A stretch of 64,000 nucleotides of DNA from Octopus sinensis (taxonomy: Eukaryota). Within the stretch, counting starts at the first letter, position 1; the number at the start of each line of letters is the position of its first letter. The notes under the pieces were generated by a model. It did not search any database and was not told where the DNA came from. It saw nothing but the letters and a program-made list of their open reading frames with translations. Location of the stretch: positions 207,018,001 through 207,082,000 of the forward strand of contig NC_042998.1 of NCBI RefSeq assembly GCF_006345805.1, in the 5' to 3' direction. Positions 7,067 through 63,080 of the stretch are shown here, one piece after another. The position numbers and the translations under genes are program-made.

Positions 7067-7186
7067 ACGCTTACTGCACCTAGGTTTCCCAAGCGGTCAC
7101 CCATCTAAGTACTAATTAGGCTCGACGTTGCTTAACTTTGGTGATCGGAGGAGAACCGGGGCTTTCAACGTGATATGGCCGTTAAA
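7067..7186 (-). pseudogene. 5S rRNA copy (probable retro-pseudogene)
   Basis: The minus strand reads ACGGCCATATCACGTTGAAAGCCCCGGTTCTCCTCCGATCACCAAAGTTAAGCAACGTCGAGCCTAATTAGTACTTAGATGGGTGACCGCTTGGGAAACCTAGGTGCAGTAAGCGT, a near full-length metazoan 5S with box A and box C. The first ~4 nt do not pair with the 3' end of helix I. Confidence 0.9.
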
Positions 7187-21038: not shown

Positions 21039-24000
21039 GTATATTGTTTGTCCTTTTTCTTTTTTTAACCTTAGGTTATTATGAGATTTTTGATGTATCT
21101 CTTTTTTTTTCTTTCTTTTCTTCTCGTTAAAAGAACCGTTTAAGACGACCTTTTATTCAATTCTTAATTTTTTTAGTATCCGAAACGATTTATATCGAGT
21201 AAGTTGGTAAGTAGTGTTTTAAGAATTGCTAGTTTTATTTTAGTTCAAATGGTTAGTGTCGGGGGAAGCAAAAGGAGAGGAAGGATGGAATCGGACGGGG
21301 TTTCCTCTTGTAGTTTGTAAATGCTAGTGTTGTTGGTTGTAGGCACTTATTCACTGCCTTTCTCACACCTAGAGCAACAATAACGGGAGTGTCTATAATT
21401 TGGTGGGGAACAAATATCTCAAGGGACTTTGTTCTTAGAGCACAAATTTCTCAGTTTTCTTCTTGACATTTTTATTCTTTCACTGATACACACAGGAGTG
21501 GTTGTGTGGTAAGTAGCTTGCTTACCAACTACATGGTTCTGGTTTCAGTCCCACTGTGTGGCACCTTGGGCCGACCAAAGCTTTCTGAGTGGATTTGGTA
21601 GATGGAAACTGAAAGAGGCTCGTCGTATGTTTATATATGTATGTTTGTGTGTGTGTTTGTCCTCCCAACATCACTAAACAACCGATGCTGGTGCGTTTAC
21701 ATCCCCATAACTTAGTGGTTCGGAAAAAGGGACCAATAGAATAAGTACTAAGCTTACAAAGAATTAGTCCTGGGGTTGATTTGCTTTAGCATGGCCGCAG
21801 TCAAATGCCTGAAACAAGTAAAAGAATAAAACAATACATCAGTGAAAGGCACACACACACACATACAGTGGCATGCACGCACACACACATGCACACAGGG
21901 CTTTGCACAATTTCTGTCTACCAAATTCCACTTACAAGCTATTGGTTAATCCAAGGCTATGCATAGTAGAAGACGCTAACTCAAGATTCTGCACACAGGG
22001 TTTGACCCTGGAACCACGTTGTTTCAAAGCAAACCGCTTAACCACGCAGCCATAAATCACTTAATATCATTCACCATTCTTAAAGTTCCTTCCAGCCAGG
22101 GCTTAAACCCAGTTTCCATAGTGATGGAATGAGATGACTACTGCCTCTGGATAGGGTGCTAGTCTCACACGCCACTTTCTCTTTCAGCCGAACAACTGGT
22201 ACCTTTTCCTCATACTAGGGGTAAAAGTTTACTGCTATCATTCATGCCAAAATGCCCGCAATGGGTACGATTTCAACGTCTATAAGTTAGGGGTGCCAGT
22301 GCCACTGGACTAGCTTCCATGCCAGTGGCACGTAAAATGCACCATCTGAGCGTGGTCGGTGCCAGTGGCACGTAAAAAGCACCATTCAAGCGTGGTTGAT
22401 TCCATGTAAAACGCACCCACTACACTCTCGGAGTGGTTGGTGTTAGGAAGGGCATCCAGCTGTAAAAATTTTACCAGATAAGACTGGAGACCAGTGCAGC
22501 CTTCTGGCTTGCCAGTCCTTAGTCAAACCGTCCAAACCATGCCAGCATGTAAAGCAGACATTAAACGATGATGATGGCATGTTATTCTTCTGCCCTACAT
22601 TTGGCATTTGAAACACATCTTCCAAGTATCGGATGTTACGTCAAAAGATTTTAAATAGTTTGTTTGTATTCCAAAGTCAGTGTTGGTGTTCTCTTGTTGG
22701 TGCCTGTCTTTTCTTTTTTTTGTTGTTGTGTAAATATATTTTTTAACTTCTTGGCTTACATAGAGACCTCTATAATCAGTACGTTTTCACTTAAGACTGG
22801 GGAAAAAAAAAGTGAAAAGGGAATGGTTGAATGTGCACAATTCCAGCCACAATAGAGGCAGGCAGACATGTGGAGATAATTTCAAACTTGTTCCATTTTA
22901 AATGTTTTATGGAAATCACGTGAATGCATGAGAGAAAAAGAAACCCCTTGTTTTCTTTTATGTATCAATATAGTGTTCCTTGTTTTTTTTTTGAAATAGT
23001 GAACAATGTATCCTTTCTTTATTGAATTCCCTTCTTTTCCGCAAGAACGGTAACTGTAGTTTGTTTACAAAGTCGTGTCTGTAGATGCTTGCATTTTTAA
23101 TGATGTCAGAAAGTCGTGTCTGTAGATGCTTGCATTTTTAATGATGTCAGAAAATCTGGTGGCACTGATCCTCAAAGATTCATTCCCCCCCCACCCCTCT
23201 AGTTGTGTTGTGTTCTTCATGCATGGTTCTTCATTTTGTCCATGTTGATTGGTGATTAAATTAATACTTTTTAAATTTATTTATATATACAGAAATAAAG
23301 TTTTTTTATTATTCACAAATGCGTGATAATGCTAATTAATAGCTTGAACAGGATAAATTCTCCATACATTGCAGAAAAATGTGTTACTGGCCAGCCATGA
23401 GACTTGAACTCACATCCCTGTGATTATGCGTCAAGTGCTTTACCATTAAGCTAAACTGCCCAGTAACAAATCCTTCTGTAATTTTAGAACTTATAAATTT
23501 AGCTTCATAAGACGCTAACATCATCATCATCGTTTAACATCCGCTTTCCATGCTATCATGGGTTGGACGTTTTTGACTGAGGGCTGGTGAACCAGACGGC
23601 TGCACCAGGCTCCAATCTTGATCTGGCAGAGTTTCTACAGCCAGATGCCCTTCCTAACGCCAACCACTCCGAGAGTATAGTGGGTGCTTTTATGTGCCAC
23701 TGGCACGGGGGCTAGTCAGGTGGTACTGGCAACGACCTTGCTCGAATCTTTTTACACATGTCACTGGCTTGAATGGTGTCTTTTACTTGCCACAGGCATG
23801 GAAGCCAGTTAGAATAAGTACTGGGCTTACAAAGAATAAGACCCGGGGTCGATTTGCTCAACTAAAGGCGGTGCTCCAGCATGGCCGCAGTCAAATGACT
23901 GAAACAAGAGAAAAGAGAAAAAATATATATATATTTTTTTTTTTTGCAAACAGTTAAAGGTAGACCTTCCTAATATCCTAGGTTTCAGTATTTGGTGAAA

Positions 24001-26923: not shown

Positions 26924-26996
26924 TGAGCTCACCAGGATTCGAACCTGCAATCTTCCGATCTGTAGTCAGACGCGTTATCCATTGCGCCACGATCCG
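26924..26996 (-). pseudogene. tRNA-Arg(ACG)-derived pseudogene; anticodon now ACA
   Basis: 73 nt: CGGATCG TG GCGC AATGGATAA CGCG TCTGA CTACAGA TCGGA AGATT GCAGG TTCGAAT CCTGG TGAGCTC A. The D and anticodon arms match eukaryotic tRNA-Arg(ACG). The acceptor stem has 2 mismatches and the T stem 1. Confidence 0.8.
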
Positions 26997-28307: not shown

Positions 28308-29658
28308 CAGTGTTTCTCAACCCTTTTTTTTTCCTATGGACCCCTGTGGTTCCTCTTTTCCTCAGATAGGCCCCATTGTCATTTTAGGTGTAAAAAAAAA
28401 TCTTATATAATTAAACCTTATCAAGAATTTTATAGAAAGGTGGCAAGCTGGCAGAATCGTTAGCACGCGGTATTTCGTCCATCCTTACGTTCTGAGTTCA
28501 AATTCCACCGAAGTCGACTTTACCTTTCATCCTTTCGGAGTCGATAAATTAAGTACCAGTTGTGTATTGGGATCAATCTAAATGACTGACACCCTCCTCC
28601 AAAATTTCAGGCCTTGTACCTTTTGTAGAATTTTGTCAAGAATTTAAAATATTTTGTCGAATGTAGAAGTACAGGGCGTCCATAAAGTCTCTTTACAATT
28701 TTTAAATTTTATTACAAAGGCAGTTGACAAGATATCTTAACCAGATTTGTTTTATTGCAATAATTGTTTATTAAAGTTTTTTTAACTGTTATTTAATAGA
28801 CCTCAGTATGGGCACCATTAGTTGCGCGAAGCACATCAAGACGGTACTTGATTTCTTGCCATGTTCACTGTAGGATAGCCTCATCAACGGTGGCAATGGC
28901 ATTACGAATCCTTTGCTTCAAGTTAGCAATGTCCCGTATCTTTGTTTGATACACGATATCTTTTACATAACCCCATAAAAAGAAGTCCAAGGGAGTGATA
29001 TCTGGCGAACGCGGTGGCCGTGGAATTGACTCATCCCTTCCAATCCATCGGTCTGGAAATGTTTGACTGAGGAACTGACAAACAGACCGTCCCCAATGTG
29101 GTGGTGCACCATCTTGCTGGAGAATGATGGCTGGTTGTAAATCAATCAGTTGTGGTGCCACATATTCGGTCAGAAGTTCGAGGTAAACATCTGCAGTAAT
29201 TGTTGCCTCGTTGAAGAAAAAGGGACCAATTATTCAATTGCTCATGATTCCACACCACACATTCACTTTTGGACTATCCCGTTGAAGCTCCTTAGTCACA
29301 TGGGGGTGTTCTGATGCCCAGATTCTCACATTGTGTCTGTTTAATTTCCCTGAAACATTAAAGTTGCCTCGTCACTAAAACAAACTCGCTTGAGGAATGC
29401 TTCATCCTCATTTTGTAGGGGTTCAGTGAATCAGTTCCCTTCCATCAACAGAGTATGTGAAACACAAAAATTTAATATCAATAAAAACTTTAATAAACAA
29501 TCATTAAAATAAAACAAATCTGGTTAAAATATTTCATCAACTGCCTTTGTAATAATTTCTTTTAAATTGTAAAGAGACTTTATGGACACCCTGTATTATT
29601 GCACATATTTTAACAACGGATCCCCAAGGGTTACATGGACCACGGTTGAGAGCCATTG
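28308..29658. mobile_element. hAT-type MITE hosting a SINE (28437-28625) and the rosa element
   Basis: TIRs CAGTGTTTCTCAACC / GGTTGAGAGCCATTG; 8-bp flanks ATTTAAAT and TTTTAAAT (7/8 match, central TA as for Buster/Charlie). Related ends at ~16154, ~44765-45387 and ~60497-60950. Confidence 0.75.
28672..29593 (-). mobile_element. Tc1/mariner DD41D (rosa-type) deletion derivative with ~110-bp TIRs and a decayed catalytic domain
   Basis: TA at 28670-28671 and 29594-29595; TIR CAGGG(C/T)GTCCATAAAGTCTCTTTACAATTT. ORF 28865-29161(-) has QQDGAPPH...WIGR...PPRSPDITPLDFFLWGYVK, with 41 residues between the 2nd and 3rd Asp. Confidence 0.92.
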
Positions 29659-30272: not shown

Positions 30273-30782
30273 CTATTGAGTCAAGTACGTTAACGCCAAC
30301 ATCAAAGTAAAAATCAAATGGAAATTGAAGTTAAGAAACCTCTGCCGGTGGCATGTAAAAAGCACCGTCCGAACGTGGCAGATGCCAGCACTGCCTGACT
30401 GGTGTCGGTGACACATAAAAGCACCAACCGATTGTGGCCGTTTGCCAGCCTCCTCTGGCTCCCATACCAGTGGGACGTAAAAAGCACCCACTACACTTTT
30501 GGAGTGGTTGGCGTTAGGAAGGGCATCCAGCTACAGAAACTCTGCCAGATCAAGATTGAAGCCTGGTGCAGCCATCTGGTTCGCCAGTCTTCAGTCAAAT
30601 CGTCCAACCCATGCCAGCATGGAAAGCGGATGTTAAACGATGATGATAATATAATTTAATGTATACAGTATTAAAATGAGCCACTAAAGGTTTCTTGCTA
30701 TGAAAACCTGTTGATAGCAAATTGTTATAACCTGTCTTGTGTCTCTGTGCTCATGGTTCTGTTTGAAAGCAAGTTATAAATC

Positions 30783-34505: not shown

Positions 34506-35528
34506 TAATTTTCTAATTGACTATGTTTTGCTCAAGAACAAAATGTGCCACTTGGTCTGGGAATTGAAACCATGATCTTTAGATTGTCATTGCAACATCC
34601 TAGCCACTATGCCATGCACCTTCACATCCAGGATATACAATGCCTGAAAAATGGGGGATGGTCATGGCTGGGGTGTCTTTGATTACAGGTCTGCTCTGTT
34701 GACCTGGTGCTAAACACCATGGAAGTATAAAATGACATCATCACCTGACTTTGCTAATGAACCGATTTCTATTGGTTCTCATTGCAAAACCTACTTGGGA
34801 CTTGGTAGAGGAATCTAGAATCCTATGTTCAACATAAGACAAGTAAACCATTTGTGGTACCGATTCCATGGTCTGTTCTTTACTGGGAGTAAAACTTTGA
34901 CCAAACCGTTGGAAGTGGGTTTGGTTGTGCTTTAGGATTCTGTATCCAATGATGTTAATGACTCAATTAACGTTATCTCAGACTGTTTGATGCATTTTCA
35001 ATCCTGGAATGATTGAACGCAGGAGTTTCCCTGAAACAAACGGCCCAAAGTGTGTAGTGTGCAGAAAGTAATTACACTTAAGGAATGAAACTAAGAATAT
35101 AAACAGGAAAGCATAAACTTTACATGTACTTCATACTTTGTATTCAACAGCTGTTTCATTAAGATAAACATTACTAAATGTATAATTACGTAATTATGAT
35201 ACATAATTAATTTCAAAGCTGTGTTTACACAAATCAATCAGGATATATATATTGTTCCTCTTGGATTTACTTCACTGTAACAATGTGTTGAAATTTTAAT
35301 TAACTGCTATTTATTAATTGAATTCCTAATTACTGTGAATTTAGTTTTTATGTTCATACATCAGTTCTTTATATGGAATTAAGGCTTTATATTAACAATG
35401 AAACAGCTTTTCTCTTCACCTAAAAGACAGGCTTTGAGGTGTGCTATATAGCGTGTAACAAAACATACCAAAGTACTGCTAGGACAGTTGTTACAATTTA
35501 AAACATTTATACAAAATACATTTTGTAC

Positions 35529-35973
35529 ATTATTTACATTTGACGGATATTTGTCCTCATCTTGTTTGTTGATAACACAATGTTTCGGCTGATATACCCT
35601 CCAGCCTTGATCAGGTGTCTTGAGGAAATTTCGAACCTGGGTTCTCATTCTTTAGGTATTTTTCAATGTTATTATTATTATTTTCAGGTCACTGCTTGGA
35701 ATTGAACTCGGAATTTTGGGGTTAACCCATGCTCTTAACAACTACGCCATATGCCTGTAGTGGTTAAGAGTGCAGGTTACTAACCCCAAAATTCCGAGTT
35801 TGATTCCAAGCAGTGACCTTAATAATAATAATAATAATGAAAAATACGTCAGGAATGAGAACCAGGTTTGAAACTTCCCCAAGACACCCGATGAAGGCTG
35901 GAGGGTATATCAGCCGAAACATTGTGTTAACAACAAACAAGATGAGGACAAATATCCGTCAAATGTAAATAAT
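35529..35973. mobile_element. Palindromic element: two tRNA-headed, hammerhead-bearing units head-to-head (relatives at ~42499-42845, ~44975-45295, ~58855-59075)
   Basis: Arms of ~220 bp are reverse complements around a central CATATG at 35748-35753. Confidence 0.85.
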
Positions 35974-36122
35974 TCCTCATCTCTTAAATATAGAAAATAC
36001 TGTTCTGTTCTCTTCATTTTCTTCTAAAACAGTTCTTTTTTCCTTTTTGTCATCTTCTAAACGTATTTCACCCGTCCTCTGTTACTGTTTATATATTTTC
36101 CCTTTCCTTTCTCTTCTAAAAG

Positions 36123-36650: not shown

Positions 36651-36754
36651 GGTATTGAACCTGCAATGCGTGTTGAAGTTTGGAAGTTTCTCTTAGATTA
36701 TTACAAATGGGACTCAACAAAGAAGAGTCGAGAGGAGGAACGGAAGAGAAAAGT
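36651..36754 (+). CDS. TBC1D15: TBC1D15-like exon (GIEPAMRVEVWKFLLDYYKWDST...RKRK)
   Basis: Acceptor ctttag ending 36650; donor GTAAGT at 36755; phase 0 to 2; R..VWKFLL motif. Confidence 0.95.
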
Positions 36755-37594
36755 GTAAGTTTTCTTTCTAATTAACTAATTGGAAATTATCATTTTATCA
36801 TAATAGCCCTACCACCCCTCCAATTATATTGTTTAATTAACTTGGTAAGATGAAGAGAATTTAGCTACTGTTTCTAGCAGATCAAGCAGTGATTTGCGTC
36901 ATAATGTTGCACACAGACCTCACCTGTTGACCATATATTCTCATTCTTGTACCTTGAGGGTGTCCCTCGACACCTCATCATCATCTTTTCCCTTTTCTTT
37001 CTTTCCAGCTTCTACAGCAAGACCCTTGTTCCTGTCCCTCTATCATAGTCTTTGTATGTTTATATGTGGTTAGTGTGGCCTCCTAGAATTTACAGATGGA
37101 CAGGAATATATCGGAAAATACAGAATGGAACATATTTAAATTGTCTCACTACATCTATGTAATTAAATAAAGTCTAAATCTGTTGAGACATGGTCTATTA
37201 ATGGAGTAAAGACTGTTTGCCAACATAACATGGCAGTCCTGGTTTAGGACGAATGTTGCTGTAATTTAGCCCCAGGAGACATCGATCTGTGTCCATACAC
37301 TTTTGAACAAGGGAATCTAGCACCCCCACTCAGCTCAAAACAATATCTGTGTATGGCGATTTTCGGGTTATTTCCCTTCATCAGCATAGAATAATTGTTC
37401 AGCTTAGAGGTGGCACTACCAAATTCCCATTTGAAATATATAGTTTTCAAAGTGACAACTAGTCACTGAACTAGCCACTGTCTCCTTTCTTGAGAAATTT
37501 GAAGCCAAAGTTATGTTACTGTCTTGTTTAAAAGTGAAAAGTTAATCTGTCGTTTTTCTTTTTGAATAACTGTTTGTTTGTTTTTTGTTTCCAG

Positions 37595-37689
37595 TGATGA
37601 TTATTTTAAAATGAAACTTCAGTGGAAAACCATAAGTGCAGATCAAGAAAGCCGGTTTACTAAACTAAAAGACAGCAAGACACTTATAG
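37595..37689 (+). CDS. TBC1D15: TBC1D15-like exon (DDYFKMKLQWKTIS...KTLI)
   Basis: Acceptor gtttccag ending 37594; donor GTGGGT at 37690; phase 2 to 1. Confidence 0.95.
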
Positions 37690-38314: not shown

Positions 38315-38784
38315 TTTGGGAAATTTGATTTAGTATTTCTAAATTGAATTTTTCCCTGTAAGTTTGGAATAATATTCCCTCATTATTATTATTACATATA
38401 CATACATTCATATATATGGATCTCTTCTTGTCTGGGGGTCCCAGATGAACCTACCTCACAACAGGAGACGCAGATGCGGGCAGCGGCATCAAACTCCCTT
38501 GTTGATCAAGTGCCACATATCAGAGGTGGATTCACATATTAGTGTAGCTCATTCAGCGGTGGTGCCCCAGCATGGCCGCGGCCTTCGGGCTAAAACATTT
38601 TTACGGATTTAAGGATTTATATATATATTTCGCTTTTGTATCTGGTTTGCTGACAAAGTAGACTTGAAATGAAATGAAATGAAACCAGAGAAAGAAACGG
38701 GTGTATTTTATTATAAGTTTTCTTGATAGTGTCATGGAAACCCAATATTTGTGTAACTGATGACGTTTTTGTTTGTCTCTCCAG

Positions 38785-38901
38785 AAAAAGATGTGTCCCG
38801 AACCGATCGCACTCACAAATTCTTCGAAGGAGACGGAAATCATAACTTACAAGTTCTAAACGACATTCTCAGAACATACTGCATGTATAACTTTGATCTT
38901 A
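38785..38901 (+). CDS. TBC1D15: TBC1D15-like exon with Arg finger (EKDVSRTDR...YCMYNFDL)
   Basis: Acceptor ctctccag ending 38784; donor GTAAGT at 38902; phase 1 to 1; IxxDxxR motif completed across the junction. Confidence 0.96.
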
Positions 38902-39722: not shown

Positions 39723-40499
39723 AATGCCATTGAGATGGAGTTCGCCAAGAAATCGTCTTTTAAGTGTCTGCCTCTCTGTGTTTGCATGGGTTAAACGATT
39801 GTAGTTGAGGTAGGTTTTCTACAACTCGATGCCTTTCCTGTTAACAACCTTCACTTGTTTTCAAGTGAGATGATAACCTACTTGTCTATTGATTCAGACA
39901 TGAGCAGCTGAATGTCTGGACATGTTTTCACATGAAATTGCTAAACAAATGATGCCATCTTGGTATGAATGGTAACTTTGTTTACAGTCAGTACAGAGTT
40001 ACATTGTTTTTCCAGATTTGCAAAACCTATAACTTGGTAAACACAAGAGAAAAATGAGTATAAGCTGGAAGAATTATAGAGTAGTTTCCAGGGATTACAA
40101 AGTAAATATATTTGGCCTCAAATATTGTTTAGCCCTTTTGATTCCAAGCCAACCTGGTTCTATAATACAAACTTACTTCTTAACCCCAAGATCCCGAGTT
40201 CGATTCCAGGCAGTGACTGAATAATAATAACAATAATAATAATAATAATAATAATATTAATAATATGGGTCCCACCTGCTAGGTCATGTGCTGTTAATCT
40301 TGATATGAGATCACCATGTCGCGCACATATGGTTGTGATGCATGTGCCTGGTGTACCCTTATCAGACGGGTAGTCATGATGGGTATACTGGGCTTTGTAT
40401 ATTTTACCCCAGTGTCACTTCGGTGGCATACACTGCTCTCTCACTCAATAGTAATAATAATAATAATAATAATGATATCGACAAACTTCCTTGTTTTAA

Positions 40500-40882: not shown

Positions 40883-41475
40883 TTAAAGTGTTTGCTAAAT
40901 TAAAACTTACCCATGAGATTTCATGTGAATTTATGTTTCAAACTCCAGTTTAATAATGACAGTTATTTTACTGAATTCTTCATTATTTTTTTTTAATTGA
41001 ATGAAACAAGTACTGTATATGGTAAAAAACCCAAAAGGGTTAAGTTACACTTTTCAATTCTACAACGGGCCCAAAACCTCAAATTTGCAGATTTTATTTC
41101 TGTTAATGCTGACTAAAGTGTAGCTGTTTCTCAAGTAATTGGTTTTTAGATTAACCCAACTTTCCTAATCTACTTTAACTCATGGCATCATAGATCAAAA
41201 TAATACTTACTTGGTTTGCAAGATTCTTTATGTGAATTTGTGTGTTGAAGCATATTTTATTGTGTCTGGGGAGAGTCATTCTCTTTTAGTACATTATTAA
41301 TTTAACATACTCACTGGTCTGATTTCCTCTCATTTTCACATAAATGAAAATAAATGAGTGGCAATCAGATTGGTGAGTGTGTTAAATTGATAAGACACTA
41401 AAAGACACGACTCTCCCTCAGACTCAATAACCAATACTTAAAATTTCTTCTAAAGTTGTCTCCCTTATTTTACAG

Positions 41476-41576
41476 GTTATGTTCAAGGAATGAGCGACTT
41501 GCTCTCTCCTATATTAGTAATAATGGAAAATGAGGTTGATGCCTTTTGGTGCTTCGCTGGTTTTATGGAAACTGTT
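41476..41576 (+). CDS. TBC1D15: TBC1D15-like exon with Gln finger (YVQGMSDLLSP...EVDAFWCF...ETV)
   Basis: Acceptor ttttacag ending 41475; donor GTAAGT at 41577; phase 1 to 0. Confidence 0.96.
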
Positions 41577-43794
41577 GTAAGTTTCTTTTCTTTGTGTAAA
41601 CTTTAAATTTATGCTTCAAAGGTTGAACCAGAGCTGCAGCTTGCCAAGGTTCTACGTGTCTTGTCTCCAGTGATAAAACTATTTTAATCCTATCATCATA
41701 CTGTCATCATCATCATCATCGTTTAACGTCCGTTTTCCATGCTGGCATGGGTTGGACGGTTTGACTGATGTCTGGAGAGCCAGTGGCTGCTCCAATCTGA
41801 TCTGGCAATGTTTCTACAGCTGGATGCCCTTCCTAACGCCAACCACTCTGAGAGTGTAGTGGGTGCTTTTTATGTGCCTCTGGCACAAGAGTCAATCAGT
41901 GGGTACTGACATCGCCATGTTCAGTTGGTGCTTTTTATGTGCCACCAGCATGGGAGCCAGTCAGGCGGATCTGGCATTGACCGAGTTCAAGTGATACTTT
42001 TTACGTGCCACCAGCACAAGAGCTAGTCAGGGGGAACTGGTCACAGCTACGATATTGGTTTAACTTGACTCAACGGGTCTTCTCAAGCATATCATACTGC
42101 CCGATGCATCTGGGTATTCTTAACAGGGCCAGTCATGCATGGCTGCAATCTCACATTAGTTGCCGAATCTTCTCAGTCGCAGCACATCTCCAAAGGTCTC
42201 TTGTCATGTTCCTGATATTATGGGAGTAGCATAAACGAAATCTCTTCTGGATTCCTGTTAAGAGATAAACTATTAAAAATAACCAACTGGTCCCATGTTG
42301 CAGCTTTGGGGTCAGCTGTGTTTAGGATTCATTACTTATGGGGTCCCACCATACCTGTTGTTTACTTTTGTTTTTAACCAAATAAAAAAAAAACGATTTT
42401 GCAATCAATCAAGCATGTGATAAACCCAGCACTTTGTTTTGTAAACATGCAAGGCCTACAGTTCTATGTTTAAGAGATGAGGAATTATGTACATTATTTA
42501 CATTTGACGGATATTTGTCCTCATCTTGTTTGTTGTTAACACCAGCCTTCATCGAGTGTCTTCGGGAAATTTCGAACCTGGGTTTTCATTCCTATGGTAT
42601 TTTTTTGATGTTGTTATTATTCATGTGGCATAGTGGTTAAGAATACGGGCTACTGACCCCAAGATTCCGGTGACCTGAATAATAATAATAATAATAATAC
42701 CAACAGTAACAACAACAACATTGAAAATTACCTTAGGAATGTGAACCCAGATTTGAAACTTTCCCAACACAGGCTGGAGAGTATATCAGCTGAAATGCTG
42801 TGTTAACAACAAACAAGATGAGGACAAATATCCATCAAATGTAAAAAATATGCAAGGCCTAGACTTTTTTTATTTATTTTTTTTTAATGCATTTGAGCAA
42901 ATTATTGGTGATATTTACTCTTTGGATGAAGAGCTTAGACTTACACTAGCAATAAGAGGGATTCAAACTGGTGAAAGAGATGAAGAAAGTAATGATCCAA
43001 GATAACAAATATGGCAGTTGAGAGAGAAAGGCCTATCATTGTTCTTCTCCTCAGTTTTTTGAGGATTCTGCTCATTGCTTTTCCTGCAGTCATTTCTCTT
43101 GAACTGTATGGGCGACTGATAGCATGTTGTCAACTTAATGTGACAGTCCTGTGAAAGGGAAGAATGCTACTGTTATTTAACCCTAGGAAACACCGTTTCC
43201 TGTTGGACTTGATTCATTTCCTGTGTCCTTATGTTTACAAAGGGGGAGACAAGCACCTCCACCCACCAAAGCCAGAATCTAGAGACTAGTTTCAGAGTCA
43301 TTGCTCATCATCAGTCTGGTGTAGCCTGGCTTGCTGGCTGTCGATGCCTATCCACCTTTGTAGACATATAATAATTCAAGTGAAATACATTCACTGATTT
43401 TTGAAATAGAAATAATATATTTCTACATCTCTGAGATTTATGCAGTAGCAGTATGATAATCTCTGAGAGATTTAGAAATGTGTCAAAGTCCAATAGGAAA
43501 CGGTATTTCCTAGGGCTAAATAACAGTAACATTCTTCCCTTTCATGGGACTGTCACATTAAATTGACAACATACTTTCACTTTATTGTGCTGCTACTGCA
43601 TAAATCTCTCTGAGAGATTTAGAAATGTATTATTTGTATTTTTTTGCTCAGGATTTCAGGTGAAGAGTAAAGTTAGACACAAGGGCCCGACTCTGAGTAG
43701 GTTAACTCTCTGTTAAATTATGTATTTGTTATGGGTGTATATAAAGTTATTTACCATATTTTGAGGTGTTTTTTTTTTTTTGTTTTGCTTTCAG

Positions 43795-43894
43795 TGTAGT
43801 AACTTCGAAATGGATCAACAAGGTATGAAAACGCAGCTGGCACAAATGCACACCTTGATGCAGTTTGTGGACCCTGAATTGTGCAGTTATCTTG
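43795..43894 (+). CDS. TBC1D15: TBC1D15-like exon (CSNFEMDQQGMKTQL...ELCSYL)
   Basis: Poly-T tract, ttcag ending 43794; donor GTAAGT at 43895; phase 0 to 1. Confidence 0.95.
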
Positions 43895-44038
43895 GTAAGT
43901 ATTTCTTAATACGATAGACCCCCCCCCCCCCTCTAGCTTTTCATCTTTCTCTTGTCGTAGCTGAACTTCATAATTGCTTTGAGAAATTAATTATAAACAA
44001 TGCAAGCTTAAAAATTCTTGAAGTAGTTTATTGTAAAA

Positions 44039-44437
44039 CTAGCAGTATCGCCCGGCGTTGCTCGGCTTTTTGTTTCGACCCTTTAGAATTGGAATTTTTG
44101 AAAAGTAAAAATTTTGCATTATGTAGCTTGTTATTCTCTTTAAGTGAACATTTTTCTGGTTCAAATACACTGAAAAATAGCAACACAGCAGTAAAAAAAA
44201 TCGTAAAAAAATAGGGATTTTCATTTTTAAAAAAAAGCACCTTTTTGATGTAAATAATTTTTGGTGTTAACATGGTCCGATTTGAATTTTTTCTTCTACG
44301 AAAGGAAGAGCAAGCCTTCTTCTATCATACTCTCAATTTTGGTCAACTTGCACCACAGGGTCTCGGAGGAGAAAGTGTTAGTTGAAGGCTACCAAACCTG
44401 CCACACACAGACAACTTCAGCTTTATATTTAGAGAGA
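44039..44437 (-). mobile_element. Non-autonomous Helitron-like element
   Basis: A|CTAGCAGTATCGCCCGGCGTTGCTCGG ... TTTATATTTAGAGAGA|T; same termini as 7474-7871 with a different core. Confidence 0.7.
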
Positions 44438-45190
44438 TTTGTTATTGCAGTTAAATAATAATAATAATATAATAATAAGCCTTTCTACTATAGACACAAG
44501 GCCTGAAATTTGGGGTGGGGGTTACAGTCGATTAGATTGACCTCAGTATATAACTGGTATTTAATTTATCGACCTCTAAAGGATGACAGGCTAAGTTGAT
44601 CTTGGTGGAATTTGAACTCAGAACATTCATGCATGGGTCATTGCCTGTGCAGCCTGACTGGCTCCCCGTGCCAGTGGCATGTAAAAGGAATCATCCGAAC
44701 GTGGATCTGTCTGTTGTAGACAGAGGAGAGTTTTGCAATTCCTTGCAAAATGATTCATTCAAAGCACAGGTTCTCAACCATTTTTTGCCTTTGTGGATCC
44801 ACTCCATTTCTTCTTTATTTCTTGCTGGACCATCATAGCCATTTGATGTCTATAAAAAAAATCCTGCTGTATTTTTATAATTTAATATTAGGAATTGTAT
44901 AAAAGGAATGTATTGTAGAAGCATAAACAATTTATAAGCCCTAAAATTCACTCCATGGTTGCCCATGGGCTTATAGTGTAGTGGTTAAGAACACAGGCTA
45001 CTAAACCCAAGATTCCGAGTTCGATTCCAAGCAGTGACCTGAATAATAGTTTACATCGTTGTTTAACGTCCGCTTTCCATGCTGGCACAGGTTGGATGGT
45101 TTGACTGAGGACTGGTGAGCCAGAAATAATAATATCCAAATAATAATATCGAAAAATGGGAATGAGAACCCAGGTTTGAAATTTCCCCAA

Positions 45191-45236
45191 GACACCTGAT
45201 GAAGGCTGGAGGGTATATCAGCCGAAACGTTGTGTT
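45191..45236 (+). ncRNA. Minimal type I hammerhead ribozyme motif (predicted)
   Basis: GACAC-CTGATGA-A-GGCTG-GAGGGTATAT-CAGCC-GAAA-CG-T-T-GTGTT: intact core, 5-bp stems I and II, palindromic ACGT helix III. Confidence 0.7.
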
Positions 45237-45988
45237 AACAACAGACAAGATGAGGACAAATATCCATCAAATGTAAATAATATAAATAATATAAATAATG
45301 CATAAGCAATTTATTGCACATAAATTCTAAAAACGAAATCTTCTCTGGACCCCCAAGGGTCATATGGGACGCATTTGAGAACCACTTGTTTAGAGCTGTA
45401 TATGAGTTCCCTCCATCCATGAAATTAACCGTGCCTCTACATTGTGCCACTCATCAAATGTCAGAAGTGACTGCAGAAGTGCTTTGCTCAACAACACAAA
45501 GCGCTGCCCAGACTGGGAATTGAAACCATAATCTTGTGATTGTGAGTGCAACACTAACTACTTGGCCAAGTGCCTTCATATTCTGTAGTATGCACACAGG
45601 TATTGTCTTGGTCTCACTATTGCTGGACACATCTTTGCCACCCTCTCTCTCATCATCATTTCCCTCTTTATCTTACTCACCAAATCTCCTTACCTTACTC
45701 TCAGACTCCATCTCCTTTCTCTTCCACCTGGGCTGTGTCCATCTACCTACAGCAAGGCACCCATCCGTGTCCCTCTTTACCTTTAATCTCTCAACTGACA
45801 CAAAGCCACCCACCACTTTAGCACTACTAAGCCGAAAGGTTCTTTGTCTTGCATGTTGCTTGGTGACCCTGGTGGTGCTGGTGCCACTTAAAATAGTACC
45901 CAGTAGACTGTAAGGTGGTTGGCATTAGGAAGGGAATCCAGGTGTAGAAACCACACCAAAACAGACAACGGAACCTGGTGCAGCTCCT

Positions 45989-46391
45989 GGCCTTACCAGC
46001 ACCAGGCCTTACCAGCACCAGGCCTTACCAGCACCTGGCCTTACCAGCACCAGGCCTTACCAGCTCCTGGCCTTACCAGCACCTGGCCTTACCAGCTCCT
46101 GGCCTTACCAGCACCTGGCCTTACCAGCACCAGGCCTTACCAGCACCAGGCCTTACCAGCACCAGGCCTTACCAGCTCCTGGCCTTACCAGCACCTGGCC
46201 TTACCAGCACCAGGCCTTACCAGCACCAGGCCTTACCAGCACCAGGCCTTACCAGCACCAGGCCTTACCAGCACCTGGCCTTACCAGCTCCTGGCCTTAC
46301 CAGCGCCTGGCCTTACCAGCACCAGGCCTTACCAGCACCTGGCCTTAACCAGTTCCCGGCCTTACCCAGCTCCCAGCCATACCCAGCTCCT
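45989..46391 (+). repeat. 16-bp minisatellite GGCCTTACCAGC(A/T)CC(A/T), 22 regular plus ~3 degenerate units
   Basis: Period of 16 from 45989 to 46340; embedded in an RTE-like 3' fragment. Confidence 0.95.
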
Positions 46392-46498
46392 GTCAAACCA
46401 TCCAACCCATGCCAACATGGAATAACGGATGATGATGATGATGATTATACTACAAAATGTTTTGAGATTTTGACATTATTTTTGTTCTTAAATTTCAG

Positions 46499-46596
46499 AG
46501 AGCCATGATTCAGGGAATTTCTATTTTTGTTTCCGTTGGTTATTGATTGTCTTCAAACGAGAATTTAGTTTCCCAGATATACAGAGATTATGGGAG
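46499..46596 (+). CDS. TBC1D15: TBC1D15-like exon (ESHDSGNFYFCFRWLLIVFKREFSFPDIQRLWE)
   Basis: Acceptor atttcag ending 46498; donor GTACTG at 46597; phase 1 to 0; strongly conserved TBC C-terminal motif. Confidence 0.96.
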
Positions 46597-47554
46597 GTAC
46601 TGTATGCACCCTTTCTTTTCAAATTTCGATAAATTACAAATAATATAAACTTGAAAATACAGGATGTGTGTGTGTGTGTGTGTGGTTGAGCTAAGGCCAA
46701 GGAACAGTGAATATCTTTGTATGGTTAATCTGACCCTGAGAATAGGTTCAAGTGTGGCTGTGTGGTAAGAAGTTTGCTTCCCAACCACATGGTTCCAGGT
46801 TCAGTTCCAGTACGTGGTACCTTGACCAAGTGTGTTCTATATACCTCAGCCAAGCAAAATCTTGTGAATGGATTTAAGGAAATGACTAGTGACCGAGACT
46901 TTTGGAAATATGCTGTGCTTGAGAAGACCTGGCAAGCCAAATGAGACCATAACCTCATGGCTTATGGGTACCTTTTCCTTCTTTGGACACTAAACTCTGC
47001 TTGCGAAGACCTGTTAAGGGAAGTGAAATCAAAATCAAATTTAATGACTGGCATCTGTTCTAGTGGGGTGCAAAGAGCACCATATGAGTGTGATTGTTGA
47101 CAGAGCAGCTAACTGGCTTCAGTGTCAGTGGCACATAAAAGGCACCGTTCAAGTGTGATCGTTACCAGCATCACCTTACTGGCACCTGTGCTGGTGGCAT
47201 GTGTAAAAAGATTTGAGCGAGGTCGTTGCCAATATTGCCTGACTAGCCCCTGTGCCAGTGGCACGTAAAAGCACCCACTACACTCTCGGAGTGTTTGGCG
47301 TTAGGAAGAGCATCCAGCTGTAGAAACTGTGCCAGATCAAGATTGGAGCCTGGTGCAGCCATTTGGTTCGCCAGCCCTCAGTCAAAATCGTCCAACCCAT
47401 GCTAGCATGGAAAGCGGACATTAAACAATGATGATGATGAAACTGAGAGAAGCCTGTTTGACTGTTGCCAATCTTTCTTTGTTCCCAGTTCAGTTTGTGT
47501 ACAAAAGACTGCCTCTTTCCATTATATTTTCTTTCTATTATATTTTCTCAACAG

Positions 47555-47671
47555 GTATTATGGACCGGGTTACCTTGTCAGAACTACCATTTGCTCATTT
47601 GTTTGGCAATCTTAGACAATGAGAAAGCTACGTTAATGGAGAATCGTTTTGGTTTTACTGAAATCTTGAAA
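47555..47671 (+). CDS. TBC1D15: TBC1D15-like exon (VLWTGLPCQNYHLLICLAILD...FGFTEILK)
   Basis: Acceptor caacag ending 47554; donor GTAAGT at 47672; 117 nt, phase 0 to 0. Confidence 0.96.
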
Positions 47672-48690: not shown

Positions 48691-49744
48691 TATACATTAC
48701 ATATCTATATCAACTTAGCTTTCCCTCGTCTGTTTTACTACAAATAACTCCTTTTCTAATCCAGTTTTTCTTCCAGTGCATCAAGTCCTTATGTAAGGTT
48801 CCTTTAACCCTTTTTATACCATATTTCTATTTCAGTCAATTTTGAAGATGATGAATATTTTAGTAGAGTAACTTTGTCCTTATTCAGTTGGAATTTTAAT
48901 GGAAGGTTTTCATTTCACTCTCCTTAACTCTTTAGTATTTCAACTAACCATATTTGACTCAATGCCAGCACCGCCTTGACCGGCTTCTGTGCCGGTGGCA
49001 CGTGACCTGCTGTGCTTGAGGAGACCTATTGAGTCAAGTACATCAACTTCAAAATAAATATCAAATGGAAATTGTAGTTAAGATACCTGTGCTGGTGGCA
49101 CGTAAGAAGCACCATCCGAATTTGGTCGATGTCAGCGCCGTCTTGACTGGCTTCTGTGCCAGTGGCACGTAAAAAGCACCAACTGATCGTGGCCGCTGCC
49201 AGCCTCCCCTGACACCTGGCTAGTGGCACGTAAAAAGCACCCACTGCACTCACGGAGTGGTTGGCGTTAGGAAGGGCATCCAGCTGTAGAAACACTGCCG
49301 GATCAAATTGGAGCCTGGTGCAGCCTCCTGGCTTCCCAGACCCCGGTTGAACTGTCCAACCCATGCTAGCACGGAAAACGGACGTTAAACGATGATGATG
49401 ATGATTCTGTTTCATGTTAAAACTGACTGTCTGGCCTCTCACACCTACCTGACAATGTCATTCTAAAAATAATCCCATTCTAAAAATAATCTCAAAGCTG
49501 TGAGATAATGCATGATTAATTCAAATTTACGTGAATAAATAAGCATTATTTATTTGGCTGTAATCTGAATGTTAAAGGATTAAAACAAGAAGTTTGAATC
49601 ATAGAACGAAAGGTGGCTGTGGGTGGGTTGCTATCAAAAGGGTTAATTTGTTCGTAGGTTAGGGCCATAAGCCCACAGCCAAGCCCTGTTTGGGTTTATT
49701 GCTTTTGATAAAATGTCTAATTGTGAGTGTCTTCCTTTTTTCAG

Positions 49745-50008
49745 CACATCAATGACATGTCTTTTACCATCAACGTGGACCAAATTCTGAACAAAGCTGA
49801 AAGCATTTGTCTTCAGCTGAAGAAATGCAGGAAGCTACCTCAAGCAATTAAGGAGATCTTAGAACTCGGTGCGTCCTCCTCGCCATCTGCTTCAAGTAAC
49901 AGTTCTGGCAGCACCACACCAGCCACTGGGAACTCTCAGTGCCAGTATCCAAATTCTAACAAGGATTATTGCTCTGGGACAGTCACAGACCACTTCACCA
50001 ACGGATAG
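49745..50008 (+). CDS. TBC1D15: TBC1D15-like terminal coding exon (HINDMS...KAESICLQL...Ser/Thr-rich tail, TAG)
   Basis: Acceptor tttttcag ending 49744; HIND.S..I.V..IL.KAE.I.LQ matches the family; stop at 50006-50008. Confidence 0.93.
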   Translation, partial: HINDMSFTINVDQILNKAESICLQLKKCRKLPQAIKEILELGASSSPSASSNSSGSTTPATGNSQCQYPNSNKDYCSGTVTDHFTNG

Positions 50009-55752: not shown

Positions 55753-55981
55753 ATTACTGTTGCTGGTGGTGAATTGTGTAAATATATCCTAAACAAAATG
55801 TGTATATTGTAACTTTTACATTTAAGATGCCATGGAGGCAACTATGAAGAGAAAATATAAAACTTGAATATGTGAATCTAGTGTTGCTTTTTTTTTTGTT
55901 TTATGTTGTTGACGGTTTATTTTCTTTTTTCTTTTCTTTGCTCAATAATTTCTGTTCTGTGAAGACCTGTGGTTTAATTCC

Positions 55982-56450
55982 CTGGGCCTTACTTCCCTGG
56001 GCATGGATACATTGAAACTCCGACGTCTGGCAGCTGACTTGGCCGACACCCATAAAATTATTAACCATCTTACAAACAATAACTCTGAGCACCTTTTCAA
56101 ACTCCACCCGTCTAACACCTGTGGACATGTTTACAAAGTCAGAAAACAGCACAGCTCCTTCCATGACTTTCGGAAACATTTTTTTCACGCTAAGAGTTGC
56201 TGAAGCATGGAACAAACTGCCGGCATCAGAGCAGTTAGTTGCCGGAGCACTGCATCCTTCAAAACTTCCATGCTTTCTGAGATTTGCCAACACTTCACCT
56301 GATTTTCTCTCCTCCATACACACACAAGCATGTACCTGACTCATACACTGTTCACTTTCCAGGCATTTCTACATTACTGCATATGCTTTATGTGCACTTT
56401 TGACAGGTTGTGGTGCACCTGAGCACTGTATACAATAATTGCATTGTTAT
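55982..56450 (+). mobile_element. 5'-truncated CR1-clade LINE (ORF2 C-terminus with frameshift, short 3' UTR)
   Basis: LKLRRLAADLADTHKI...TCGHVYKVRK...RKHFF, then in another frame FFTLRVAEAWNKLP, matching CR1 L..RRLR.DL...YKI...TRGH..K...FF..RV...WN.LP. Confidence 0.85.
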
Positions 56451-57556: not shown

Positions 57557-60500
57557 TATATTCTGTTTTATGATTAAACCAGCCAGATCAGACATCTTAC
57601 ACCTGTCCTGCAATATCATTTTAAAACTAAACTATCACATCATTGAAATTTCAGTGCCACGGTGTTAGCACACCAGGCAAAATAATTAGCCATATTTCGT
57701 TTGTCGTTACGTTCTGAGTTCAAATTCCGCCATGGTCAACTTTGCCTATCTTCCTTTAGGGGGTCGATTAAATAAGTATCAGTTACACACTGGGATCAAT
57801 ATAATTGACTTAAGCTGTTTGTCCTCTCTGTGTTTAACCCCTTGTGGTAGTAAAGAAAAAGGTATTTAGCCTGCCGCTACGTTCTGATTTCAAATTCTGC
57901 CGAGGTCGACTTTGCCTTTCATCCTTTTGAGGTTGATTAAATAAGTACCAGTTGAATACTGGGGTTGATATAATCGACTTAATTTGTTTGTCCTTTCTGT
58001 GTGTTGCCCCTTGTGGGCAGTAAAGAAATAAGAAATTTCAATCCCACAAGATAATCCTTGATTAATTCAAAACAATCATCATTGTCTAACGTCTGCTTTC
58101 CATCCTAGCATGGATTGGATGGACTGACATGGAGCTGCCCACACTCCAGTTGTCTGTTGTGGCATGGTTTCTATGGCTGGATGCCCTTCCTAATGCCAAC
58201 CACTGAGTGTGCTGGGTGCCTTTTAACGTGCCATCAGCAGGGGTGGGTTTACCCAGCACTGGCATGGGTGCTGTTTATGACACTGGCACCTGCAAAGAGC
58301 AAGCTTGTATGTATGGAACACAGCGATTTTACTTAGCTATCCGTGCTATGACTGGCATCCGTGCTAGTGGGGTGCAAAGAGCACCATACGAGTGTGATCA
58401 TTGACAGAGCGGCTAACCGGCTTCCGTGCCAGTGGCACATAAAAGTCACCATTCGAGTGTGATCGTTACCAGTGTCGCCTTACTGACACTTGAGCCCCGT
58501 GCTAGTAGGGTGCTAAGAGCACCATCCGAGCGTGATCGTTGCCAGAGCAGCCAACTGGCTTCCGTGCTGGTGACACGTAAAAGGCACCGTTCGAGCGTGA
58601 TCGTTACCGGCGTCGCCTTACTGGCACCTGTGCGGGTGGCATGTGTAAAAAGATTCGAGCAAGGTCGTTGCTGGTGGCATGTAAAAAGCACCCACTACAT
58701 TCTTGGAGTGGTTGGCGTTAGGAAGGGCATCCAGTTATAGCAACACTGCCAGATCAGATTGGGATCTGGTGCAGCCATCTGGTTCGCCAGCCCTCAGTCA
58801 AAATCGTCCAACCCATGCTAGCATGGAAAGCAGATGTTAAACGATGATGATGATCTTGTTGTTAACATAATGTTTCAGCTGATATACCCTCCAGCCTTCT
58901 TCAGGTGTCTTGGGGAAATTTCGAACCTGGCTTCTTATTCCTAAGGTATTTTTCGATATTATTATTATTATTATTATTATTCAGGTCACTACCTGGAATC
59001 AAACTCGGAATCTTGGGGTTAGTAGCCCGAGCTCTTAACAAGATGAGGACAAATATCCGTCAAATGTAAATAATGTACTTTGAGATAATGCATGATTAAT
59101 TCAAAACAATTTGAATAAATAAGCCTTCCATTTGACAGAGTTCTATGAACGCTTAAGCATCACAGGAGAGGGCAGTCTCAAGGTTACTCCAAGGTAGATT
59201 GGGTCAGTACAGTACTCCAGTGTATTCCTGACCATTTACTCTTCAGAAGTTGGTTGGTTTCATAATTCCTGAGATGGAACGAGCAAGCTCTCGTCTTTTC
59301 AAATTGTTCTCTCTTGTAAACAATAATTTGTTTTAAGGCCATCTCCCCCCCTCCTCCCCCATTAAAACAGGGAGTTCACCTTGCTGGCCCATCACGATCT
59401 AAAACTCATCATGGTCCCTTGTTTCGCTTTTTATGGCTGGATGGTCTTCTTCCGACAGTTGTTATTAAAAACACTAATAAATGGTGATGTTTATCTTTTC
59501 TCTTTTGTCTCACTCGTTACCCAGTGGCCATACTGGGGCAGCACCTTGAAGAATTTTAGTAGGTTTTTTGAAGCTTAGTACTTATTCTATCAGTCTCTTT
59601 TGCTGAACTGCTAAGTTACCGGGATGCAAACACACCAACACCCATTGTCAAGCAGCAGTGAGGAACAGACAGACACACACACACATCTATCTGTTTATAT
59701 ATGACGGGCTTCATTCTATTTCCATCTGTCAAATCCACTTGCAATGGTTCGGCTGGCCCGAAGCTGTAGTAAAAGATACTTGCCCAAGGTCTCTCACAGT
59801 GGGACTGAACTCGGAACCACGTGGTTGGGAAGCAAACTTCTTACCTCACAGCCACGCTTGTTTGTTTTCTCAAACTGATGAGATAAAATTGCAACAAGGT
59901 TTTCTTGCCCCCATTCCCCGACCCCCCCCCTCAAGACCAAAACAATTATTTCCTAAGAAATCAAATATCTGTGGTATGCTGGAATATTTTCTTCATCCAC
60001 ATCCTTCTCTTATCACAGAGAAAGAAAGAGCAGCTAATTGGGTGGGGTGGGGGGAAGAGAGAGGAGCTAATCTCAATACTGACATATAATCCAATCTTAC
60101 TTCATCTTCCACCCTTGCCCATCCCATCTAGTGATGTGTTCCTCCGTTTCCTTTCATGACTTGTCAGAAAAATATCTAATTATCCAGTTCCAGGTGTGTT
60201 GGAATTGTCTTATCAATTACACACCTGCCTCAGGTGAGTAAATATATAATGCATTTGTCATTGCTGTTTTGTATTACAAAAATGTTGCATGCCTGTGGGG
60301 GTGGGGGTATTACTTTTTGTGATTACCCAGTCTTAGCAGCAGAGTTTACACCCATTTGCAGGAAGCAAAGAAGGTAAGCATATTTAGACAGACTTAAAAT
60401 GGTTATTGTTCAGCCCTGGGTTGGTTCTGAGTGAGCCAAACCTATGATGAATCATTCCAATCATGACCATCCTTATGGGTTTTGTTCTACGCCTGTGGTT

Positions 60501-62429: not shown

Positions 62430-63080
62430 CAATGACACGAGTGACTGAGACCTTTGGAGATATGCTGTGCTTGAGAAGACCGACAGGCCAAGTGAGACCA
62501 TAACCCAGGGCCTATGCCAGTGCTGTATAACCAGCCCATTTAAGAATACCCTTCAATCATTGGGCAATAAACTTTGCTTGTGAAGACCTGTTGAGGCAAG
62601 TGAAATCAAAATCGCTGATGTGGCCAATGATGGTACCGCCTGATTGGCATTCGTGCCAGTGATATGTTAAAAGCATATCTGAGCGTGATCGTTACCTGGG
62701 CTGCTGACTGGCTCCCATGCAGGTGGCACGTAAAAAGCACCATTCGAGTGTGATCATCGTCAGTGTCACCTTACTGGCACACGTGCCGGTGGCACGTGAA
62801 AAACAACATTTGAGCATGGTTGTTGCCAGTGCAGGTGGCATGTAAAAAACACCTTTTGAGTGTGGTCATTGCTAGTATTACCTGACTGGCCCTCGTGCTG
62901 GTGGCACGTAAAAGCACCCACTACACTCTCGGACTGGTTGGCATTAGGAAGGGCATCCAGCTGCAGAAACTCTGCCAGATCAGATTGGAGCCTGCTGCAG
63001 CCTTCTGGCTCACCAGTCTTCAGTCAAACTGTCCGACCCATGCCAGCCTGGAAAGCGGACGTTAAATAACGATGATGATG
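62430..63080 (+). mobile_element. RTE LINE 3' fragment with internal GTGGCACGTAAAAAGCACC unit array and (GAT)n tail (representative of >15 copies)
   Basis: Same 3' sequence as 16420-17170. Other copies at approx. 2385-2750(+), 4388-4690(-), 15445-15850(+), 22285-22575(+), 23518-23800(-), 24970-25290(+), 30290-30650(+), 41700-42230(-), 46880-47440(+), 48960-49404(+), 58310-58855(+), 61025-61510(-), 63420-63928(+). Confidence 0.85.

Follow-up and report, generated by a model that had tools for sequence, protein, structure and literature searches.

Penelope-like elements (PLEs) carry a minimal form of the hammerhead ribozyme (min-HHR), which lacks helix III and loop 3 and was present in the pseudo-long terminal repeats (pLTRs) of all PLEs examined by Cervera and de la Pena (2014; PMC4209133). 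The min-HHR also occurs as thousands of dispersed copies in metazoan genomes (PMC4209133). Its hallmarks are a residue that separates positions 9 and 10.1, a G10.1-C11.1 pair, palindromic positions 15.2-16.2 and a helix I of 4-5 bp; dual motifs on opposite strands lie 100-700 bp apart, and most motifs are single and probably belong to truncated elements (PMC4209133). Cleavage was not detectable for a single min-HHR, and dimeric and trimeric constructs showed low activity in vitro (PMC4209133); according to reviews the in vivo role of PLE min-HHRs is "still a mystery" (PMC6765202). Here we describe such a motif in Octopus sinensis (RefSeq assembly GCF_006345805.1, contig NC_042998.1, positions 207,018,001 to 207,082,000 of the forward strand; this stretch of 64,000 nucleotides is referred to as the window and all coordinates are given relative to it). 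The motif spans positions 45191-45236 on the plus strand and is located in an intron of a gene resembling TBC1D15. With a probability of roughly 0.7 we consider it to be a copy, identical to its inferred ancestor, of a PLE-type min-HHR that belongs to a short non-autonomous retroelement and is essentially inert in the intron.

Sequence reading, pattern and descriptor scans and folding identify the 46 nucleotides as a minimal type I hammerhead with the sequence GACAC-CTGATGA-A-GGCTGG-AGGGTATA-TCAGCC-GAAA-CG-T-T-GTGTT. Helix I consists of 5 bp (45191-45195 with 45232-45236, GACAC/GUGUU) and is followed by the C3-A9 core CUGAUGA (45196-45202) and an additional unpaired A (45203) between A9 and G10.1. 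Helix II comprises 6 bp including one G-U pair (45204-45209 with 45218-45223, loop at 45210-45217) and contains the G10.1-C11.1 pair (G45204-C45223). G12, A13, A14 and A15.1 are found at 45224-45227, C15.2 at 45228, G16.2 at 45229, U16.1 at 45230 and U17 at 45231; the predicted scissile bond lies between 45231 and 45232. All residues of the general hammerhead core (CUGAUGA, GAAA, U16.1-U17) are present, which agrees with the initial annotation, in which the stretch had been read as a minimal hammerhead with a complete core and cleavage after U45231. Every hallmark that PMC4209133 gives for PLE min-HHRs is likewise found here. The ACGU palindrome occupies 45227-45230 and helix III has no loop. 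Since A15.1, C, G and U16.1 are contiguous, an intramolecular helix III is impossible and pairing with a second copy is needed; the earlier statement that minimal hammerheads are poor ribozymes as monomers and require a second copy is also borne out by PMC4209133 and PMC6765202.

The pattern CTGATGA..GAAACGT matched once in the window and not at all in 100 shuffled sequences. The min-HHR descriptor used for the second scan was deliberately general (it asked for CTGANGA, for GAAA-NN-U-H with Watson-Crick pairing of 15.2/16.2 and for a minimum of 4 bp in each of helices I and II, and it permitted a bulge between CTGANGA and helix II); applied to both strands of the window it retrieved only the motif at 45191, and it had no match in 300 first-order Markov windows. 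A chance origin of the motif is excluded. The Rfam hammerhead models did not match it at the gathering score or at E<=10, and standard annotation would therefore overlook it.

The segment that carries the hammerhead is repetitive. Self-comparison and a profile search revealed six copies and two fragments in the window, three of the copies on the plus strand (45139-45300, 35827-35990 and 42700-42870) and three on the minus strand (35510-35660, 58840-58985 and 42470-42625). The carrier unit comprises a tRNA-like head of about 80 nt, an (AAT)n stretch and a body of about 165 nt with the hammerhead, which adds up to roughly 250-350 nt; the hammerhead is located about 50-65 nt from the constant 3′ end of the body (...CAAATGTAAATAAT). 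In the head an A-box-like TAGTGTAGTGG and a B-box-like GTTCGATTCC are about 45 nt apart, each in agreement with 10 of the 11 consensus positions. These two box matches are the reason for calling the head tRNA-like, and they suggest that the element might be transcribed from its head by RNA polymerase III (Pol III). A fragment at 40180-40246 (+) consists of the head and a long (AAT)n stretch and has no hammerhead body. This hints that head plus (AAT)n may by itself constitute a short interspersed element (SINE), and that the family with the hammerhead may be chimeric, with a PLE-derived module inserted into the microsatellite tail of this SINE.

The element with the intact motif is a solo, apparently full-length copy with the most complete head of the family; it extends from 44936 to 45299 (+), with an uncertain 5′ limit (44936-44968), its head lies at about 44968-45048, and its 3′ end ...CAAATGTAAATAAT is followed by about three units of a 9-nt repeat. 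Comparison of the flanks identified a target site duplication (TSD) of 15 bp, GCATAA[A/G]CAATTTAT, with the left copy GCATAAACAATTTAT at 44921-44935 and the right copy GCATAAGCAATTTAT (14/15 identical) at 45300-45314, adjoining the 3′ end of the element. The (AAT)n stretch of this copy is split by a different repeat of about 72 nt (45049-45137), a later, nested insertion that the remaining members of the hammerhead family lack. This second repeat is very abundant: its core (..GTTTAACGTCCGCTTTCCATGCTGGCA..GGTTGGA..) occupies 45054-45125 and a minimum of 25 further sites, which are spread over the whole window on either strand, for example 63003-63074, 41714-41783, 30575-30649 and 16434-16503, and it gives rise to many spurious open reading frames (ORFs) with the peptides HGLDGLT and LQLDALPNANHS. 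A candidate miniature inverted-repeat transposable element (MITE) surrounding the copy at 45 kb was rejected; it consisted of a single 9-bp inverted match (GGTTCTCAA/TTGAGAACC) and occurs just once in the window.

The five other copies belong to three further insertions. At 35520-35988 a minus arm (35529-35755) and a plus arm (35756-35973) form a head-to-head inverted pair; the arms of about 227 and 218 nt are 88.6% complementary, and a tail (TCCTCATCTCTTAAA...) is present at the right end only. The TSD of this insertion is ambiguous; a 12-nt candidate, TATA[C/G]AAAATAC, was rejected as doubtful, since it overlaps a sequence that is common to the tail of the insertion at 42.4 kb. The latter is the second inverted pair (42447-42861 including the TSDs), with a minus arm of 134 nt (42493-42626), a plus arm of 223 nt (42627-42849), a 34-nt tail at the left end only (42459-42492) and a perfect 12-bp TSD, ATGCAAGGCCTA (42447-42458 and 42850-42861). 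The insertion at 58856-59078 (-) is a 5′-truncated copy (58856-59038) that is joined to a 42-nt inverted piece of its own 3′ end (59037-59078); its 3′ portion has been replaced by another repeat, and inspection of its flanks did not reveal a TSD. Two of these independent insertions have one-ended extensions of homologous sequence (TCCTCATCTCTTAAA[C/T]ATAGAA..). All four independent insertions share the same outer 3′ end and differ in the position of the inner 5′ end.

This architecture corresponds to that of PLEs. Craig et al. (2021) described PLE insertions with an inverted, 5′-truncated copy abutting the 5′ end and with a tail of 30-40 bp at one end only; the insertions in the window show inverted partners of about 227, 134 and 42 nt, one-ended tails and TSDs of 12 and 15 bp. 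Two of the four insertions are in addition opposite-strand hammerhead pairs of the type reported in PMC4209133. An alternative that has to be considered is that the carrier is an ordinary tRNA-derived SINE which depends on a long interspersed element (LINE) and carries a hammerhead in the manner of the Sm-alpha and Sj-alpha elements, without any link to PLEs. The A-box-like and B-box-like sequences of the head, the internal (AAT)n and the simple-repeat 3′ end would all be expected of such an element, a fragment of head and (AAT)n occurs by itself, putative LINE fragments lie in the window, and SINE-like elements that combine a promoter with a hammerhead are known (PMC6765202). The hammerhead found here is, however, of the minimal PLE type and not the canonical type I of Sm-alpha with helix III and loop-loop contacts. 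Moreover, two complete inverted copies that both retain the 3′ end, together with a one-ended tail, are not made by LINE-driven insertion; twin priming inverts a 5′ segment that does not overlap with the remainder. We regard an origin unlinked to PLEs as unlikely, and favor a non-autonomous element that was probably mobilized by the PLE machinery.

Among the six copies in the window only the one at 45191 retains both the core and the ACGT palindrome, the other five being defective. The plus-strand hammerhead at 35883-35928 has the core CCGAUGA (U4C) and ACAU, the minus-strand hammerhead at 35574-35619 has CUGAUCA (G8C) and ACAU, and the minus-strand hammerhead at 58.9 kb shows CUGAAGA, a G10.1-U11.1 pair, ACAU and a C2.1/A1.1 mismatch in helix I. 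In the plus-strand copy at 42.76 kb the core is deleted and the palindrome reads ATGC, and the minus-strand copy at 42.54 kb has an internal deletion of 23 nt. The initial annotation had counted four readable copies, one of them intact and the others with ACAT: the unique intactness of the copy at 45191 stands, with six copies instead of four, and ACAT applies to three of the five defective ones. At the palindrome CG has changed to CA three times and to TG once, which suggests that an ancestral ACGU was lost by CpG decay, as had been proposed.

Outside the hammerhead the copy at 45 kb has diverged by 6.2%, whereas within the 46 nucleotides it has no change relative to the inferred ancestor; the other alignable hammerheads have 2, 2 and 4 changes per 46 nt. 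Divergence from the six-copy consensus is 4.5-6.7%, with one copy at 18%. At a divergence of about 6% the probability of finding no change in 46 nt is about 0.06 for a given copy; that one or more of the six copies would be unchanged has a probability of about 30%. The copy at 45 kb retains five of its eight ancestral CpGs overall, so that the survival of both CpGs of the hammerhead is unremarkable. In helices I and II of the four alignable copies one G-C pair has become G-U and one mismatch has arisen, and no compensatory pair was found. Judged from these substitutions, the intact 46-mer is compatible with neutral decay and the pattern carries no sign of selection. The intactness at 45 kb would then reflect sampling and not a function for the host.

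Several points weigh against our interpretation. The absence of changes in the 46-mer, with its per-copy probability of about 0.06, may be taken as a weak hint of conservation. A further point comes from the minus arm of the insertion at 42.4 kb (42535-42550), where the 23-nt deletion reads GAAGGCTG directly joined to GTGTTAAC: its 3′ boundary coincides with the predicted scissile bond between U17 and G1.1, a shared G leaving an ambiguity of 1 nt. This junction could be a sign that the ribozyme of the family cleaves in vivo. It may be the footprint of reverse transcription, with a template switch at a ribozyme-cut 5′ end, or a coincidence, and it is a single case. In addition, transcripts of the family might be so abundant as to provide partners in trans. 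With regard to the carrier, the head was not called as a tRNA by ARAGORN (run on the window and, with relaxed thresholds, on the heads and a hybrid consensus) or by Rfam at E<=10. Neither an ORF for a reverse transcriptase (RT) or endonuclease next to any of the copies nor a pLTR sharing the 3′ module was found in the window, and we infer the dependence on PLEs from the insertion architecture and the type of motif alone. Finally, with six copies the consensus and the TSD statistics are thin.

We propose that the element inserted into the intron of the TBC1D15-like gene with duplication of a 15-bp target, roughly 6% divergence ago, and that its ribozyme would serve the life cycle of the element itself. 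Two copies would pair via the ACGU palindromes and thereby build helix III, and each core would cut the other copy 3′ of GUU, in multimeric or closely spaced transcripts. In a double hammerhead one copy contributes the strand with 16.x, H17 and 1.x to a junction whose core and 15.x strand come from the other copy. From this topology and from the double-hammerhead arrangement of Forster et al. (1988, cited in PMC6765202) it follows that the bond between 45231 and 45232 would be cut by the core of the partner and not by its own. The pre-mRNA contains two other sense-strand copies within the window, at 35883 (U4C) and at 42.76 kb (core deleted); the cores of both are dead and there is thus no competent partner in cis in the window. 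On its own in a long pre-mRNA, and lacking a competent sense partner close by, a copy would be essentially inert.

Folding predictions point in the same direction. In the isolated 46-mer the structure with helices I and II has -12.0 kcal/mol, compared with a minimum free energy of -12.6 kcal/mol, and in contexts of 86-446 nt helices I and II together have an ensemble probability of 0.003-0.13, that is, they are a minority fold. U16.1 and U17, together with the 3′ strand of helix I, are taken up by GUUGU-GUUA-ACAAC, a local hairpin that is conserved. A double hammerhead with its helix III of 4 bp reaches -22.3 kcal/mol, compared with -25.2 kcal/mol for two monomers and -29.2 kcal/mol for the best dimer. 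The hammerhead region can also pair over about 120 bp with antisense copies in the same pre-mRNA (35529-35650 and 42488-42600; predicted energies of -206 and -151 kcal/mol).

The initial annotation had suggested that the intronic hammerhead pairs in trans with family transcripts, so that the intron is cut between 45231 and 45232; expression of TBC1D15 would thereby be lowered or modulated. The half of the motif that would serve as substrate (ACGU, U17 and GUGUU) is indeed intact, the family has multiple copies and perhaps its own Pol III-type head, so that partner RNAs could be plentiful, and both the unchanged 46-mer and the deletion junction at the scissile bond would fit. The cut, however, requires the core of the partner, and besides the two dead sense copies the remaining three copies in the window are defective as well. 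PLE min-HHRs cleave weakly in vitro even as dimers and trimers (PMC4209133), the dimer with its 4-bp helix III is less stable than two monomers, whose own helices are a minority fold in context, duplex formation with the antisense copies (about 120 bp, -206 kcal/mol) can make the region unavailable, and the decay pattern gives no sign of selection. Cleavage of the intron in trans is thus not supported and we judge it improbable; regulation or cutting of the TBC1D15 transcript by the motif is likewise unsupported. Slightly more doubtful still is a combined scenario, in which a Pol III-headed SINE parasitizes PLEs, its min-HHR is active in vivo with the junction at 42.5 kb as a template-switch footprint, and family RNAs dimerize with solitary sense copies and cut host pre-mRNAs.

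Least probable is an assignment of the family to the class II elements, as a foldback element or MITE bounded by long terminal inverted repeats, such as the hAT-like MITE named in the initial annotation, with the hammerhead-like motif as a by-product of its sequence: although long, near-perfect palindromes make up two of the four insertions, the arms vary in length (227/218, 134/223, 42/183 and 0/364) while the outer ends are constant, a tail occurs at one end only, the copy at 45 kb is solo and not palindromic, the TSDs have 12 and 15 bp and not the 8 bp that, like defined ends with terminal inverted repeats, are expected of a hAT MITE, and the motif satisfies a descriptor that had no match in 300 simulated windows.

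The host gene was assigned by homology. The exon downstream of the motif (46499-46596, +) encodes SHDSGNFYFCFRWLLIVFKREFSFPDIQRLWE, and its product matches the GAP domain of TBC1D15/TBC1D17 (PDB 5tuc, E 1.4e-11). A query composed of four exons retrieved TBC1D15 proteins from many animals, with a gastropod protein as top match (66% identity) and no octopus orthologue among the matches. With a TBC1D15 homologue, tblastn found colinear exons on the plus strand at 36678-36767, 37596-37688, 38784-38900, 41475-41594, 43795-43893, 46498-46599, about 47555-47671 and 49742-49861, the exon at 43795-43893 (..NFEMDQQGMKTQLAQMHTLMQFVDPELCSYL) being the one upstream of the motif. The hammerhead is thus located in the sense strand of a 2.6-kb intron (43894-46498), as annotated initially, and the predicted scissile bond is 1268 nt 5′ of the exon beginning at 46499, close to the distance of 1.26 kb given before.

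The intron also contains, between the hammerhead and exon 46499, a tandem array of a 16-nt unit (CAGCACCTGGCCTTAC, 24 copies, 93% matches; 45981-46366) that stops some 130 nt short of the 3′ splice site. The head-to-head pairs at 35529-35973 and 42493-42849 are part of the TBC1D15-like pre-mRNA and are predicted to form hairpins of about 130-220 bp, with a duplex energy of -197 kcal/mol for the arms at 35.5 kb; double-stranded RNA of this kind could be a substrate for editing by ADAR in a cephalopod. A full-length match to 5S rRNA within the span of the TBC1D15-like gene (7068-7186, -; 91 bits, E 2.8e-18) could be a 5S gene, a pseudogene or the head of a 5S-derived SINE. Two tRNA-model matches barely exceed the Rfam threshold (26924-26996 and 23389-23460, both -), of which the first was called tRNA-Cys (anticodon ACA) by ARAGORN and the second was not called; both may be SINE heads or pseudogenes. 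Remnants of ORFs for transposases of the Tc1/mariner type are located at 28868-29233 (-) and 10275-10655 (-). The former retrieves Tc1-like DDE transposases (best matches 75-79% identical), and the latter, a putative remnant, resembles the N-terminal helix-turn-helix part of a transposase. A locus retrieved by way of the transposase search contains neither the hammerhead family nor the abundant repeat of the window and was rejected as stemming from a different organism. Downstream of the gene, ORFs at 55949-56336 (+) with the signature ...LKLRRLAADL...FF..RV.EAWNKLP... resemble the C-terminal end of a LINE ORF2, which would make them a LINE 3′ fragment.

A search of proteins with an open-frame, chimeric query across the element gave one match, a dystrobrevin beta isoform X1 of Octopus bimaculoides (GCA_001194135.2). 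The N-terminus of this model, GEGWRVYQPKCCVNNKQDEDKYPS, corresponds to the element in exonized form, its CpG already lost to decay; this may be either a real exonization or an artefact of the gene model. A 22-mer common to four of the six copies had no exact-pattern match in metagenome_contigs and viral_contigs. In Octopus vulgaris 30 Penelope families are reported to have been active recently, and SINEs to have expanded at a Jukes-Cantor distance of 0.065 (PMC13282606); the latter value agrees with the divergence of 4.5-6.7% of the copies in the window.

The analysis shows that a genuine minimal hammerhead can be recognized from the bare sequence where the Rfam models miss it, and it extends the min-HHR class, together with a Penelope-style insertion pattern, to the genome of a cephalopod, where its carrier resembles a SINE. 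This is useful for the annotation of octopus repeats, hundreds of SINE families being still unclassified, and bears on the question of the in vivo role of PLE min-HHRs. Only with RNA ends between 45231 and 45232 would the locus exemplify the action of a transposon ribozyme on a host transcript, and cleavage by family RNAs in trans would amount to an attack of transposon ribozymes on octopus introns.

The amniote hammerheads HH9 and HH10 and the hepatitis delta virus-like (HDV-like) ribozyme of CPEB3 are single-copy, complete, competent as monomers and conserved at orthologous sites across species. Like them, the octopus sequence appears to be a motif of the self-cleaving type that lies, in sense orientation, within an intron of a protein-coding gene; unlike them, it is a member of a multi-copy repeat, lacks helix III and has no Rfam match. 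Metazoan retrozymes of the non-long-terminal-repeat type are likewise small non-coding, AT-rich retroelements with a type I hammerhead and long TSDs, and they are thought to be mobilized by PLEs (PMC7229834; Li et al. 2026, preprint 10.64898/2026.07.22.740005). Retrozymes are, however, arranged as head-to-tail tandem repeats of 170-400 bp, contain canonical hammerheads and are expressed as circular RNAs, whereas the profile search of the window found solo and inverted copies only and no tandem array of the hammerhead unit. Sm-alpha and Sj-alpha (Ferbeyre et al., 1998; Laha et al., 2000; both via PMC6765202) share with the octopus family the plan of a short non-autonomous repeat in which a Pol III-type promoter region is followed by a hammerhead. 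Their hammerheads are described there as canonical type I, with a short but real helix III and loop-loop contacts, and often occur in tandem; the octopus copies in contrast have no helix III, are solo or inverted, and have a head that is weakly tRNA-like.

From the PLE min-HHRs (PMC4209133; Lunse, Weinberg and Breaker, 2017, via PMC6765202) the octopus motif differs in its surroundings, with no adjacent RT/GIY-YIG ORF or pLTR seen and with a carrier that has a tRNA-like head and (AAT)n; its helix II of 6 bp differs from the 7-8 bp of the Schistosoma motifs, and its cephalopod host is not among the genomes named in the excerpts of PMC4209133. The ribozyme itself is of the same build: a type I hammerhead with no helix III and loop 3, with palindromic positions 15.2/16.2 (ACGU), an unpaired nucleotide between A9 and G10.1, the G10.1-C11.1 pair, a helix I of 5 bp with no defined loop 1 and a longer helix II. 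Dispersed single motifs and opposite-strand pairs a few hundred bp apart occur in both, and both are expected to work only as dimers. The class of minimal, dimer-dependent hammerheads is thus already known and the motif at 45191 is a further member of it; mildly new are the cephalopod host and a carrier that resembles a Pol III-headed SINE with PLE-style integration.

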